Shown here in pieces: positions 60,891 to 64,000 of a DNA stretch of 64,000 nt (its first letter is position 1; each line of letters begins with the position of its first letter). Made by a program: the position numbers and the translations under genes. The notes under the pieces were generated by a model. It did no database searches. It was not told the DNA's origin and was given only the letters and a program-made list of their open reading frames with translations. The DNA lies in the sequence record MF498773.1; one strand, written 5' to 3'.

Positions 60891-60917
60891 ATCAAATTCT
60901 CCGTTAATAAAAAGAAA

Positions 60918-61143
60918 AACGGGGACTATATCAAGCCAGTCAAAGCAAGATAAAGTCCCCGTTGCCGAACGTTGTCTTTGGTGTCAGACAACAACCTTGT
61001 GATAGTGGTAGGTCACACCACCCTCTTTAAAACGGGGACCATAATCGAGGCAATATGGTCTCTTTTCGTCTAGTGACAATACAGGGTATCACCTTTACCC
61101 TTGACTCGTATTGTTTGACGCCGCTGCGCCACTCTTGGGGCGC
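60918..61143 (-). ncRNA. Candidate structured ncRNA or leader
   Basis: About six hairpins in an intergenic segment, e.g. aacggggact/agtccccgtt, gttgtct/agacaac, gaccata/tatggtc, agggta/taccct. Strand inferred from context. Confidence 0.55.
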
Positions 61144-61158
61144 GTACACTTTAAAATC

Positions 61159-61420: not shown

Positions 61421-61765
61421 TTACAGGCTTTCTATGTATTTAATCACACGGTTTAGTATTTCATTTGAATCATTTATCTCAATATCATCAAATGCATACT
61501 TTATCTTTTTTATTACAGTTTCTTTCTTCCATCCGATCTTGAAAGCATCATTAACGAAAGAAACCCAATCAATAATATAACCGGAATTATAAAATTTCTC
61601 TATCAGAATATCCAACGGAATACCATTTGTTTCAAACTGATAAAATATATTACATAAAACCGGAATACCACTATTGGTATAACCATTTACAAAAACACTA
61701 TTTTTACCTTTACGTCCTAACGGCTTGCGTTTAGCGGTGACATATACAACCTCTCTTTTTAAGTT
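61421..61765 (-). pseudogene. AlaRS-like helical-motif protein with an out-of-frame start
   Basis: The frame is open from 61765 to 61421 (IFYQFETNGIPLDIL...IIDWVSF), but the SD-led ATG at 61743 is in another frame. Confidence 0.5.
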
Positions 61766-61836
61766 TTAGCTTCATGTGCGGCTGCAAAGCAGGTCGAACC
61801 ACCAAGGCACATACTTGTTAATGTGGTTCCGTAAAT

Positions 61837-61890
61837 TGGCAGGGCGTTGAGGATTTGGAATCCGGCATAATACCACTATACTAACACCCT
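61837..61890 (-). pseudogene. tRNA-Trp(CCA) pseudogene lacking the variable loop and T arm
   Basis: AGGGTGT/ACGCCCT acceptor stem, G discriminator and CCA; GGA-TTCCAAA-TCC anticodon arm; only 54 nt. Confidence 0.75.
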
Positions 61891-61900
61891 AGAATCGATC

Positions 61901-62280
61901 TGGTCGCACCATCACCAGACTTAATAGCATTGGCTACCCGAGCCCACACATGTAAACCTCAAACACCCCAATGGGTTAAGCCTACAAGAAGGTCTTGCTC
62001 GTTACTTTTACGCTTAGGCCCTTACGGGAATCTAAGCCTTTAGATTTAACGTCATAACGGACGCGCTTATGTGATGGCTTGAATCAGTGGTCATTCACAA
62101 GCAGACTCCCTATGTAACCTTTTACCCGTCACGGACTAGAACCTTATTACAGGGAAGGAACCTACATCACCATTTGAATAATGGGAGAGGTCGGGGTTCG
62201 GTTTTTATTTTCTAGCTTTCACTAGATTTTTACAAATACCGGTGGGCTACTTAAAGCGTCGATTCTCATAGACCGGACTA
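61901..62280 (-). ncRNA. Candidate large structured RNA (~300-380 nt) ending in CCA
   Basis: Multiple stems, a ccc-GTAA-ggg tetraloop, and 3' ...GCGACCA. Confidence 0.55.
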
Positions 62281-62299
62281 TTGACAAGAATCCAAAATT

Positions 62300-62375
62300 T
62301 GGTGCCGAATGTCCGACTCGAACGGACCACCCCAGCGTTACAAAGGCTGTGCTCTACCAGATGAGCTAATTCGGC
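62300..62375 (-). tRNA. tRNA-Thr(TGT)
   Basis: Cloverleaf GCCGAAT...TT TGT AA...GTTCGAG...ACCA; C-C mismatch at the base of the anticodon stem. Confidence 0.9.
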
Positions 62376-62654
62376 TGACGGAATATAATCAGGATCGTTA
62401 GACTGTGATTATATCCTAATGTGGTTGACATGCTATCATATCGAGGAAGGACGTTCAACCGATTTTGTCCATCTGTTCGTTGTTTGGTAAAGGACAGTTA
62501 CCTCAAGTTCAACCCTGCTTGTCAAGGGGTAGTTACCATATCGTCTTTGTACTACCAATCCCGCCTGAAACCTAAAGGCACGTTTCAGGATATCCAGATT
62601 CTCTATGGCTGGCTTATTCCGGGGCATACGTCGTTACCCGTTCTTTGTGCTAAG
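62376..62654 (-). ncRNA. Candidate structured RNA (~280 nt) between tRNA-Pro and tRNA-Thr
   Basis: Stems cctgaaac/gtttcagg, ggtagt/actacc, tgtcc/ggaca, ggttga/tcaacc, atataatca/tgattatat. Confidence 0.55.
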
Positions 62655-62730
62655 TGGTCGGTGATACAGGACTCGAACCTGTGACCCTCTGGTCCCAAAC
62701 CAGACGCGCTACCAACTGCGCTAATCACCG
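62655..62730 (-). tRNA. tRNA-Pro(TGG)
   Basis: CGGTGAT...TCTGG-TTTGGGA-CCAGA...GGTTCGAG...ACCA. Confidence 0.95.
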
Positions 62731-62884
62731 AAAAGTTCCAAATCAACTGTATTTTACATACCAGATGACCACATCCCTATAATGGTTGATTTGGATTACC
62801 CCGTGCTTATCCGTAACGATTTAAAACCGCAAGGGGGCATCGTCTCCGAGGATTTTATCAGAACGTCTTCTAACTTCTTCTATT
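62731..62884 (-). ncRNA. Candidate structured RNA (~150 nt)
   Basis: ccaaatcaac/gttgatttgg 10-bp stem; acgat/atcgt stem. Confidence 0.4.
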
Positions 62885-62975
62885 TGGTGGATGTTGTTGG
62901 ATTCGAACCAACTTGTTTACCCAGAGGGAACGGATTTACAGTCCGCCGCTACACCGCCATCGTAGCCGAACATCC
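62885..62975 (-). tRNA. tRNA-Tyr(GTA)
   Basis: GCGGA-CTGTAAA-TCCGT, long variable arm, GGTTCGAATCC, ACCA. Confidence 0.95.
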
Positions 62976-62981
62976 AGAATT

Positions 62982-63058
62982 TGGCTGGCGAGGTGGGATT
63001 CGAACCCACGACATACGGATTAACAGTCCGCCACTCTAACCTACTGAGTTACACGCCA
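62982..63058 (-). tRNA. tRNA-Asn(GTT)
   Basis: GCGGA-CTGTTAA-TCCGT, GGTTCGAATCC, GCCA. Confidence 0.95.
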
Positions 63059-63059
63059 T

Positions 63060-63137
63060 TGGAAGCGGGGGGTGGATTTGAACCACCGATTTCCAGATAA
63101 TGAGTCTGGTGAGAACTCCTGACTTCTCCACCCCGCT
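63060..63137 (-). tRNA. tRNA with CAT anticodon, fMet-like but atypical
   Basis: AGCGGGG acceptor, CCAGA-CTCATTA-TCTGG, GGTTCAAATCC, TCCA. Confidence 0.85.
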
Positions 63138-63142
63138 ATGAA

Positions 63143-63149
63143 TATTTAG
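63143..63149 (-). promoter_or_regulatory. Putative late promoter CTAAATA inside the tRNA cluster
   Basis: Immediately upstream of the CAT tRNA at 63137. Confidence 0.5.
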
Positions 63150-63302
63150 GGTGGTCTTTCACCCTTCATGAATCTTGGTCATTATAACCCGGCTACATAC
63201 GCGCATCAACATCCCTTTTGATATTTTTAGAAGCGATGGGACTCTGTATCGCTTCATTATTATCGTAAGGTCAACGACCATTAAATTAGTGAGAGCTTAC
63301 GA

Positions 63303-63497
63303 CTATAGAATATATGCATTAACTATGGATTTTTCAATCTGTCTTACTGACGTAAGTTTATTCTTACCTTTAAACTTAAAGGCAGGTTCTCCATTTGGAG
63401 CAAACCCAAAGACTACTAAACTATGGCGTCCATTCTTCCAGTGGATTATACCATCACCAACTGACCAATTTTCAATTATGGATTTTATACCAGACAT
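63303..63497 (-). CDS. Small hypothetical protein within the tRNA cluster
   Basis: GAGAG RBS; AT-rich spacer with protein-like composition. Confidence 0.6.
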   Translation of the reverse strand: MSGIKSIIENWSVGDGIIHWKNGRHSLVVFGFAPNGEPAFKFKGKNKLTSVRQIEKSIVNAYIL

Positions 63498-63519
63498 AAT
63501 ATAGCTCTCATCAAAAATT

Positions 63520-63596
63520 TGGTGGCCCCTACTGGACTCGAACCAGTGACCAACCGATTATGAGTCGGCTGCTCTAACCTACTGAGCTAAGGGGCC
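63520..63596 (-). tRNA. tRNA-Ile2(CAT, lysidine type)
   Basis: GGCCCCTTAGCTCAG...CGACTCATAATCG...AGGGGCCACCA, the ileX-type body. Confidence 0.9.
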
Positions 63597-63600
63597 AAAT

Positions 63601-63668
63601 GATATGTTCTTTAGTCGAGCCGACTTATCCGTATTCTTTCAACGGTGAGCTGATAGCTGTAACACATC
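63601..63668 (-). ncRNA. tRNA-like cloverleaf with no canonical loops
   Basis: GATGTGTT/AACATATC closing stem with three hairpins: AGCT/AGCT, CCGT/ACGG, AGTCG/CGACT. Confidence 0.5.
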
Positions 63669-63680
63669 AATTTTAAATCT

Positions 63681-63756
63681 TGGAGCGGGTAGCCGGTAAC
63701 GATCCGGTCTACTCAAACTTGGAAGGCTTGCATGTATCCATAAACACCTTACCCGC
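63681..63756 (-). tRNA. tRNA-Gly(TCC)
   Basis: GCGGGTA...CAAGC-CTTCCAA-GTTTG...TCCA; atypical T loop (ATCGTTA). Confidence 0.9.
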
Positions 63757-63757
63757 T

Positions 63758-63841
63758 TGGTCGGGATGGACGGACTCGAACCGTCACGCCTATGGCGCTA
63801 GAACCTAAATCTAGTGTGTCTGCCAATTTCACCACATCCCG
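63758..63841 (-). tRNA. tRNA-Leu(TAG)
   Basis: CTAGA-TTTAGGT-TCTAG, variable arm, GGTTCGAGTCC, ACCA. Confidence 0.95.
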
Positions 63842-63918
63842 TGGTGCGCCGTACTGGATTCGAACCAGTGACCCACGCTTTAGAAGAACGTTGCTCTATC
63901 CAACTGAGCTAACAGCGC
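63842..63918 (-). tRNA. tRNA-Arg(TCT)
   Basis: argU-like GCGCTGTTAGCTCAGTTGGATAGAGCAACG..CTTCTAA...ACCA. Confidence 0.95.
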
Positions 63919-64000
63919 AATTTATATAAACATCATATCACAGTTAGAAAGGATGTTTAACTTTTATTTGAAGTATTTTTCGAAGTAAGCGACTGGATGT

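Follow-up and report, generated by a model that had tools for sequence, protein, structure and literature searches.

RNAs C and D of phage T4 provide the precedent for small RNAs made from a phage tRNA region (PMC3014915, PMC9697503, PMC12685909). They are late RNAs, detectable on Northern blots, and have no known function (PMC9697503, PMC3014915). The corresponding loci, rnaD and rnaC, are labelled species 2 RNA and species 1 RNA, respectively, in NC_000866. An Rfam scan of the T4 rnaC/rnaD region matched only tRNAs, so neither RNA C nor RNA D is represented by an Rfam model. GOLLD (RF01998) and ROOL (RF03087) are structured non-coding RNAs, often phage-borne and found beside tRNA genes, a location known in phages (bioRxiv 10.1101/2024.12.08.627333). 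YrlA (RF02553, Y RNA-like) and other tRNA-like modules are stable structured RNAs of bacteria and phages that are also tied to tRNA biology. We analyzed the spacers of the tRNA array of Aeromonas phage AS-szw, a T4-like phage with its nearest relatives classed in Straboviridae, Emmerichvirinae, Ceceduovirus. The stretch studied (hereafter referred to as the window) consists of the first 64 kb of this phage (MF498773.1; 100% identity). Sequence comparison suggests (probability of about 0.75) that these spacers encode at least seven separate RNA modules in a chain, each folding independently and co-transcribed with the tRNAs. Our best guess concerning their nature is that they are trans-acting stable RNAs freed by tRNA processing. 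Comparative evidence places two of the modules (hereafter referred to as X and Y) in two RNA families, each with a conserved secondary structure that covaries and includes pseudoknots.

Organization of the spacers

ARAGORN identified nine tRNA genes in the window (62300–63918), every one of them on the minus strand, and the spacers were therefore read on this strand. The spacers concerned are S1 (61891–62299), S2 (62376–62654) and S3 (62731–62884). From tRNA-Tyr onwards, the order in the transcript is tRNA-Tyr, an RNA D-like module, a hairpin block, tRNA-Pro, X, two hairpins, tRNA-Thr, module A, Y and its 3' extension, module C and a tRNA-Trp remnant. The modules begin at, or a few bases from, the 3' CCA of a tRNA and stop a few bases short of the tRNA that follows, and the linkers between them are A/U-rich and predicted to be single-stranded. 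All the stems listed in a previous sequence-only reading of this DNA were found on the minus strand, each within or between defined modules: gcttag..GTAA..ctaagc in module C, gcttgtgaat/attcaagc in the 3' extension of Y, tctag-tgaaag-ctaga between A and Y, cctgaaac/gtttcagg as helix P3 of X, ggttga/tcaacc in the 62376–62463 block and ccaaatcaac/gttgatttgg in the 62731–62793 block.

Family X

Family X is an RNA of about 190 nt with seven hairpins and three pseudoknots, located at positions 62464–62654 (minus strand). In the window, it begins at the base following the CCA of tRNA-Pro (UGG; 62655–62730, minus strand; ARAGORN, 70.1 bits with the Rfam tRNA model) and constitutes the first 190 nt of S2. 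A covariance model (CM R1) based on nine non-Aeromonas sequences and seven nested helices, with no Aeromonas sequence in the seed, matched X in the window over its full length (model positions 1–192; 72.7 bits, E-value of 7e-19), and the window sequence pairs in accord with all the helices in the resulting alignment. This model detected no second copy of X in the window, and nothing in the T4 tRNA region.

Pairs were counted on the CM-derived alignment, with the addition of the three pseudoknots. The first of these pseudoknots pairs a 5' CCAC/GCAC/CUAC segment with the P3 loop, the second pairs the P5' loop with a downstream CUNG, and the third pairs the P6 loop (GUCC/ACCC/GCCC/UUCC/AUCC) with the 3' tail. 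Overall, 96.3% of the cells were paired, versus 26–40% in slid controls, and the covariation score was 0.453, versus 0.04–0.07 in these controls. Compensatory changes were found in 35 of the 50 pairs, with support for all 10 helices. The strand of X was fixed as minus because the frequent G-U pairs in its helices fit only that strand.

Homologs of X were found in unannotated stretches of the E. coli jumbo phages vB_Ec-M-J, 121Q and PBECO4, in the Klebsiella jumbo phages RaK2 and K64-1, in T4-like phages of Proteus, Morganella and Shigella (Bragavirus) and in a T5-like Proteus phage (Novosibvirus). Identity is 81–91% among Bragavirus, Novosibvirus, Asteriusvirus and Alcyoneusvirus, and diverged copies are present in IMG/VR and metagenome contigs (L078, L100 and L103). 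No open reading frame (ORF) is conserved across the homologs, no Rfam match was obtained for three of them, and X had no matches in a search of 185,579 species genomes of bacteria and archaea, or in E. coli genomes. GenBank records contain “hypothetical proteins” drawn over X, the RNA D-like module or tRNAs (L002 3018–3343, 65p135 and 65p134; L003 2730–3047, assk_341), and the E. coli jumbo-phage records likewise have “hypothetical proteins” over X; these calls are probably spurious. Just downstream of X in vB_Ec-M-J (L007 1594–1647), a stretch of 54 nt is 81.5% identical to sequences of E. coli podophages of about 76 kb (vB-EcoP-XT32 and others), which hints at another shared non-coding module.

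In Proteus PM2, Shigella SdyM_006 and Proteus phage 2, X alone fills the gap between two tRNAs, lying 0–3 nt after one and 6–11 nt before the next, and one copy in L103 begins at the base following the CCA of tRNA-Arg. The 5' end of X meets a tRNA 3' CCA in five contexts; the jumbo-phage copies do not follow a tRNA. The fold is retained with different flanking tRNAs (Gly/Asp, Leu/Leu, Pro or Arg) and, in the jumbo phages, with none. This bears on the possibility that the elements function exclusively in cis, insulating the folding or guiding the processing of neighbouring tRNAs, or tuning tRNA yield, and are inert once released. Such a role would fit their tight adjacency to tRNA ends, always on the tRNA strand, and the location of the hairpin blocks at 62376–62463 and 62731–62793 just upstream of tRNAs. 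However, X keeps its 190-nt, three-pseudoknot fold regardless of the flanking tRNAs, or without any, Y occurs with no tRNA nearby in contigs L022 and L051, and merely 1–10 nt are enough at most tRNA junctions of the same arrays. We consider action in cis only to be unlikely.

The X fold is complex, pseudoknotted and of ribozyme or ribonucleoprotein-RNA size. Together with the coincidence of its 5' end with the tRNA 3' CCA border in five contexts, and with the new description of cDNA-templating phage non-coding RNA arrays (bioRxiv 10.64898/2026.09.22.753630), this would be compatible with the modules being guide, template or scaffold RNAs of a phage or host protein machine, or self-cleaving ribozymes freeing the tRNA 3' end. 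We regard this explanation as quite improbable, given that no Rfam ribozyme class matches, that there is no consistently adjacent partner gene, the neighbours differing in every phage, and that the jumbo-phage copies of X do not follow a tRNA. The resemblance of GAGG..AGUCC and AACCGG to CR-I and CR-V raised the idea that X might be a minimal RNase P RNA. No RNase P model matched, and this idea was rejected because the covarying partner of GUCC is GGAC, and not the CCGG segment. Mimicry of an anticodon loop was also rejected: the CUGUCCU loop is locked in a pseudoknot, and the CUGUAAU loop has no closing 5-bp stem.

Family Y

The core of family Y, defined by a second covariance model (CM R2) and pair counts, lies at positions 62102–62211 (minus strand). 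It comprises a closing helix (P1), a variable hairpin (P2), a pseudoknot (AACC/GGUU) and a CCU-GUAAUA-AGG hairpin, followed on the 3' side by a triloop hairpin (GUC-CGU-GAC) and then GGGUAAAAGGUUACAUA. The shared core reads ..GAUGKAGSUUCYUUYCCUGUAAYAAGGUUYYAG-hairpin-GGGUAAAAGGUUACAUA.. and the features taken to indicate membership, namely the CCUGUAAYAAGGUU core, the triloop hairpin and GUAAAAGGUUACAU, are all present in the window, with a full-length match to CM R2. The window sequence, which is included in the seed, scored 118.3 bits; independent members scored 86–110 bits, and scores across all Y members ranged from 86 to 124 bits.

Y was found in the Aeromonas T5-like phages AhSzw-1, Akh-2 and AhP_Mru1, in Ahp1_CNU, in Citrobacter Ci1, in Cronobacter S13 and LPCS28, and in the IMG/VR contigs L022 and L051, with 82–90% identity between Aeromonas T4-like and T5-like phages. 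In the Y alignment, 84.7% of the cells were paired (28–47% in slid controls) and the covariation score was 0.188 (0.03–0.06 in slid controls). A table compiled by hand gave four strand variants for the pseudoknot, seven for the P1 closing helix and six for the triloop hairpin. By direct reading, the pseudoknot, in which a 5' AAASC pairs with GSUU, takes the forms AACC/GGUU, AAGC/GCUU, AGGC/GCCU and ACUC/GAGU. The Y core has stops in all three forward frames. In bacterial genomes, the only matches to Y were chance matches in coding sequences and one mis-binned phage contig. CM R2 found nothing in T4 at E≤5, and a likeness to T4 RNA D noticed by eye (GAUGGUUCC..CUG.GUAAGG) was thus not confirmed. 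In L022, Y lies upstream of an ORF of 320 aa encoding a putative homing-endonuclease-like protein.

The core is followed by a 3' extension (62041–62101, minus strand) with the hairpins GCUUGUGAAU..AUUCAAGC and GCGUC..GACGU. This extension is a feature of Aeromonas T4-like phages, conserved in the Ceceduovirus and Ishigurovirus relatives, and is replaced by other hairpins in the Y copies of T5-like, Citrobacter and Cronobacter phages. In L078 (IMG/VR, 119,931 bp), a Y-like element (8–113; CM R2 25.8 bits, E-value of 0.007) lies directly upstream of a diverged X (120–322), which is followed by tRNA genes, so X and Y co-occur in a second, unrelated phage lineage. Strict motif scans of IMG/VR and metagenomes yielded mostly known phages, plus the new members L022, L051, L078, L100 and L103.

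An RNA D-like module

The 5' part of S3 (62794–62884, minus strand) is probably a remote relative of T4 RNA D, this relationship being unproven. It begins directly after the CCA of tRNA-Tyr (62885–62975, minus strand; ARAGORN), position 62884 being the next base, with AAUAGAAGAAG as an A-rich leader, and continues with a 5' hairpin (UUAGAA-GACG-UUCUGA), UAAAAUCCUCGGA and a closing helix (CCUCG/CGGGG). A covariance model of the rnaD family (seed: T4 rnaD, JS98, HY03, UPEC07 and Klebsiella UTI-K1) matched this module with 18.3 bits (E-values, roughly calibrated, of 2.8e-4 for a search of 2.3 kb and 0.02 for one of 163 kb); the Klebsiella sequence included in the model shares a 35-nt near-identical stretch with the window. 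The model also matched the homologous sites in AP1, Assk, CC2 and P19, and that in ZPAH1 with 22.4 bits. A stretch of 35 nt of the module is 94% identical to Klebsiella Jiaodavirus phages, in which it lies directly after tRNA-Asn, in a spacer that is a clear relative of T4 rnaD (76.7 bits).

The module resembles T4 RNA D in its operon position, its strand, which is that of the tRNAs, and its location directly 3' of a tRNA CCA (T4 rnaD follows tRNA-Arg). It also resembles RNA D in having an A-rich leader and a 5' hairpin followed by UAAnUCSUCGGA, an arrangement seen in T4, JS98, UPEC07, Klebsiella, ZPAH1 and AS-szw, with hairpin stems differing by compensatory changes. The closing helix is likewise similar, with CGUCG/CGGCG in T4 versus CCUCG/CGGGG in the window and in ZPAH1, one pair having flipped from G-C to C-G. 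In the ZPAH1 copy, the 5' hairpin, with compensatory changes, and the closing helix are kept around a different core; core swapping of this kind is also found within the T4 rnaD family. Unlike T4 RNA D, the module is about 30 nt shorter, scores only 18 bits and lacks the conserved 3' ACAGCWGAAACGGCGCAC, which is absent from both the window and the Klebsiella copy.

More generally, the candidate RNAs of the window resemble T4 RNAs C and D in being small, in lying on the strand of the tRNAs and in being encoded distally in a T4-type tRNA operon. The analogy with these RNAs drawn in the sequence-only reading was apt, with 62794–62884 appearing even as a weak relative of RNA D. X, Y, A and C, however, have no detectable homology to the T4 RNAs (blastn; CM R1 and CM R2 silent in the T4 region), and the tRNA-like T arm (CCGGGUUCGAAUCCCGG) and acceptor-like stem of RNA C are found in none of the spacers. 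The blastn matches to T4 RNAs C and D were confined to the T arms of genuine tRNAs.

Hairpin blocks and modules A and C

The remaining part of S3 (62731–62793, minus strand), directly upstream of tRNA-Pro, is predicted by RNAalifold to form a long hairpin with an 11-bp stem (UCCAAAUCAAC/GUUGAUUUGGA) and two small internal hairpins. It is nearly invariant in five relatives, with the few substitutions keeping pairing and zero compensatory changes, and is absent from ZPAH1, in which the RNA D-like module adjoins tRNA-Pro. The remaining part of S2 (62376–62463, minus strand), between X and tRNA-Thr (UGU; 62300–62375, minus strand; ARAGORN, 55.7 bits with the Rfam tRNA model), contains two hairpins (GGUUGA..UCAACC and GGAUAUAAUCA..UGAUUAUAUUCC) and was found only in Aeromonas relatives. 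RNAalifold predicted 26 pairs for this block, three of them with compensatory changes, such as G-C to A-U at the base of the first hairpin.

In local blastn comparisons, S1 falls into three pieces, designated here by their positions within S1: A (1–71), B (84–259) and C (260–409). Module A (62226–62299, minus strand; about 75 nt) combines a GGAUUCU..AGAAUC hairpin with a long-range helix (CCGG/CCGG) and a conserved CGACGCUUUAAGUAGCCC. In phage 65, this module lies after tRNA-Asp, and in the T5-like contig L109 it lies after Y; direct reading of L109 revealed compensatory changes from CCGG/CCGG to CGCC/GGCG and from GGAUUCU/AGAAUC to GGAUUUC/GAAAUC. Contig L109 (JBOFFJ010000068.1; 4.9 kb) is labelled as part of a Phocaeicola metagenome-assembled genome and contains 23 tRNA genes in addition to Y and A, both nearly identical to those of Aeromonas T5-like phages; the most likely explanation is mis-binning of a phage contig. 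One of its tRNAs (334–408; ARAGORN) has a CUA (amber-reading) anticodon.

Module C (61891–62040, minus strand; about 150 nt), found only in Aeromonas Emmerichvirinae, has three structural parts according to RNAalifold: a hairpin capped by a GNRA loop (GGCUUAG..CCC-GUAA-GGG..CUAAGC), a long domain with multiple stems and, on the 3' side, a further hairpin (GUCUGGU..ACCAGAU). Four of its 43 predicted pairs have compensatory changes, the other stem substitutions nearly all preserve pairing, and the apex of the first hairpin is replaced in CC2 and phage 65, with pairing kept. The GCGACCA previously taken for a tRNA-like 3' end lies inside the covarying 3' hairpin, and is not a CCA end, because the sequence at this site is ACCG in Assk, CC2 and P19. 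About 87 extra bases are present at the B/C junction of S1 in Assk (L003 1855–1942) and CC2 (L017 2814–2901); S1 positions 259–306, at the start of module C, match twice, indicating a partial tandem duplication in these phages. Modules A and C and both hairpin blocks appear to be structured, with limited covariation for A, C and 62376–62463, and none for 62731–62793.

Modularity and horizontal exchange

Blastn comparisons with phage genomes showed that pieces of each spacer recur in unrelated phages, in every case within or beside tRNA arrays and on the tRNA strand. Phage 65 has no B, and thus no Y. Sharing of the X/Y type follows host group rather than phage ancestry, and presence is patchy among close relatives. 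These comparisons show X and Y as sequences exchanged horizontally between the tRNA arrays of unrelated large virulent phages of Gammaproteobacteria.

They also bear on the suggestion that the spacers and tRNAs form one very large GOLLD- or ROOL-like ornate RNA with embedded tRNAs. The proximity of GOLLD and ROOL to tRNAs in phages, and the density of stems in this 1-kb stretch, made this idea plausible, but a single ornate RNA is excluded because the modules occur separately and reordered (phage 65, the Proteus phages, L109 and L078), beside other tRNAs. Furthermore, there was no GOLLD or ROOL match even at E≤10, the global fold of S1 was not better than those of shuffled sequences and no long-range helix between spacers was seen. 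GOLLD and ROOL are single units of 500–800 nt, whereas the modules described here are independent and 60–190 nt long. YrlA differs from them in having a tRNA-like domain; weak YrlA/tRNA signals were obtained here only on true tRNAs. The modularity of the spacers largely refutes the single-RNA reading, which we now consider hardly credible.

Coding potential, composition and Rfam searches

In agreement with the sequence-only reading, the spacers have no credible genes: their ORFs are short, not conserved and without Pfam or PHROG matches, and the longest (56 codons, in S2, overlapping X) contains stop codons in AP1, CC2 and P19 and in all distant homologs of X. The spacers had also been described as GC-richer than the genome; this holds for S1 and S2 (G+C of 0.44 versus 0.385 for the window, at about the 95th percentile of 400-nt windows), but not for S3, which is average (0.396). 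Rfam scans were run on the whole window with gathering thresholds and on positions 61700–64000 at E≤10. Only tRNAs were matched in the window, the one extra signal being a 22-bit tRNA match at 61840–61890. Scans of homologs of X and Y likewise matched no Rfam family other than tRNA. GOLLD, ROOL, tmRNA, RNase P and group I and II introns were all negative in the spacers at E≤10, with tmRNA, RNase P and the introns also negative at gathering thresholds, and the Rfam tRNA model gave no tRNA-like signal inside the spacers at E≤10. ARAGORN found no tmRNA.

These results weigh on the possibility that the spacers are functionless remnants of decayed tRNAs, homing endonuclease genes or small ORFs, with stems arising by chance. 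The window does contain a tRNA-Trp lacking 21 nt, pseudo-tRNAs are annotated in relatives, homing endonuclease genes lie within related arrays and folding z-scores are weak. However, compensatory changes are found in all 10 helices of X and in Y, sequences are conserved across phage families at 81–91% identity, and the spacers display no tRNA-like CM signal at E≤10, no ORF conservation and no protein-family match. Decay is thus refuted for X and Y and conceivable only for short linker stretches; as a general explanation, it is extremely unlikely. The suggestion that the spacers encode structured non-coding RNAs on the tRNA strand is instead supported by covariation, which the search for homologs revealed in the X and Y structures across phages, and by conservation between phages.

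Distal end of the array and neighbouring features

A tRNA-Trp (CCA) remnant lies at the distal end of the array (61837–61890, minus strand). Alignment with the intact AP1, P19 and CC2 copies showed it to lack 21 nt, corresponding to the 3' half of the anticodon stem, the variable loop and most of the T arm, and that the missing bases fall between two AAUCC repeats. It was not called by ARAGORN and scored only 22.4 bits with the Rfam tRNA model (61840–61890); either this gene has become a pseudogene or the AS-szw assembly contains an error here. It is followed by a stem-loop (61770–61834, minus strand; GAACCAC..GUGCCUUGGUGGUUC) resembling the sequence 3' of T4 rnaC and of JS98 rnaD (..UGCCUUGGCAGGUGGAAC..), which may be a conserved end-of-operon signal. 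Promoter and terminator scans gave no signals above those of shuffled sequences.

About 0.7 kb downstream of the array, a 268-nt intergenic region (60891–61158, minus strand) shows 100% identity across 13 Ceceduovirus genomes and about 75% identity in Ishigurovirus. It is predicted by RNAalifold to form 75 pairs, 27 of them with compensatory changes, and its 3' end has a GC-rich hairpin and a U run, resembling a terminator. This region, for which there was no Rfam match, is likely to be a further unannotated structured RNA. Within the array, a 64-codon ORF (63303–63497, minus strand), annotated and conserved in AP1, phage 65 (65p133) and Aswh_1, looks like a real small gene amid the tRNAs.

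Release and possible function of the modules

The modules adjoin tRNA ends, and their excision by host tRNA-maturing enzymes would therefore be expected, as the sequence-only reading had proposed. RNase P would cut at the 5' ends of downstream tRNAs, with RNase E and 3' trimming acting elsewhere, and the released modules would then persist as separate stable species, as do RNAs C and D of T4. We infer this release and stability from the positions of the modules and from what is established about tRNA processing in E. coli and T4.

Several points weigh against a chain of separate, stable RNAs. The alignments used for pair counts were fitted to the model and are thus biased toward structure, a bias mitigated by the slid controls for X and Y. 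The folding energies of single spacer sequences were not better than those of shuffled sequences (z = −1.65, −0.29 and −1.64); structure beyond chance is indicated by covariation and conservation across phage families, and not by folding energy. The helices of Y are short (3–6 bp) and were partly picked by eye, making this family less secure than X. In L022 and L051, Y lacks neighbouring tRNAs, and tRNA-linked processing is therefore not universal. Modules A and C and the 62376–62463 and 62731–62793 blocks were compared among few, close relatives.

If the modules are indeed released as stable RNAs, their compact pseudoknotted folds might, as a tentative guess, serve in trans to bind a small ligand or a protein of the host or phage, rather than being mere cis-acting spacers. 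Such a trans role would be a host-tied accessory function, such as counter-defence or the control of RNA processing or translation. We favour a host-linked role in trans over one in cis because of the patchy presence of these elements in close relatives, the tracking of host group by their sharing and their compact pseudoknotted folds. A more specific and somewhat more doubtful possibility is that X, and perhaps Y, represents a new class of actively functional phage RNA: a decoy or inhibitor of a host defence or RNA-processing protein, a ligand-binding RNA or a catalytic RNA.

X and Y are absent from Rfam 15, have no real counterpart in bacterial genomes and are not annotated as RNA in any GenBank record examined, these stretches being either unannotated or annotated as hypothetical proteins. 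They are new families among the small RNAs of phage tRNA operons, within a comparison that did not extend to the catalogue of 10,006 viral candidate RNAs in PMC10690425. The current view of phage tRNA arrays is that they are loci of counter-defence and translation tuning, and their non-tRNA content has so far been ignored. With 190 nt and three covarying pseudoknots, X is in the complexity range of riboswitches and ribozymes, and its presence in phages with culturable laboratory hosts (E. coli phages 121Q and PBECO4, and Proteus phage PM2) provides a comparative and genetic handle. If X and Y do constitute an actively functional class, they would have spread among unrelated large phages because they are advantageous on particular hosts, and the same logic would explain the 50-year-old puzzle of T4 RNAs C and D.

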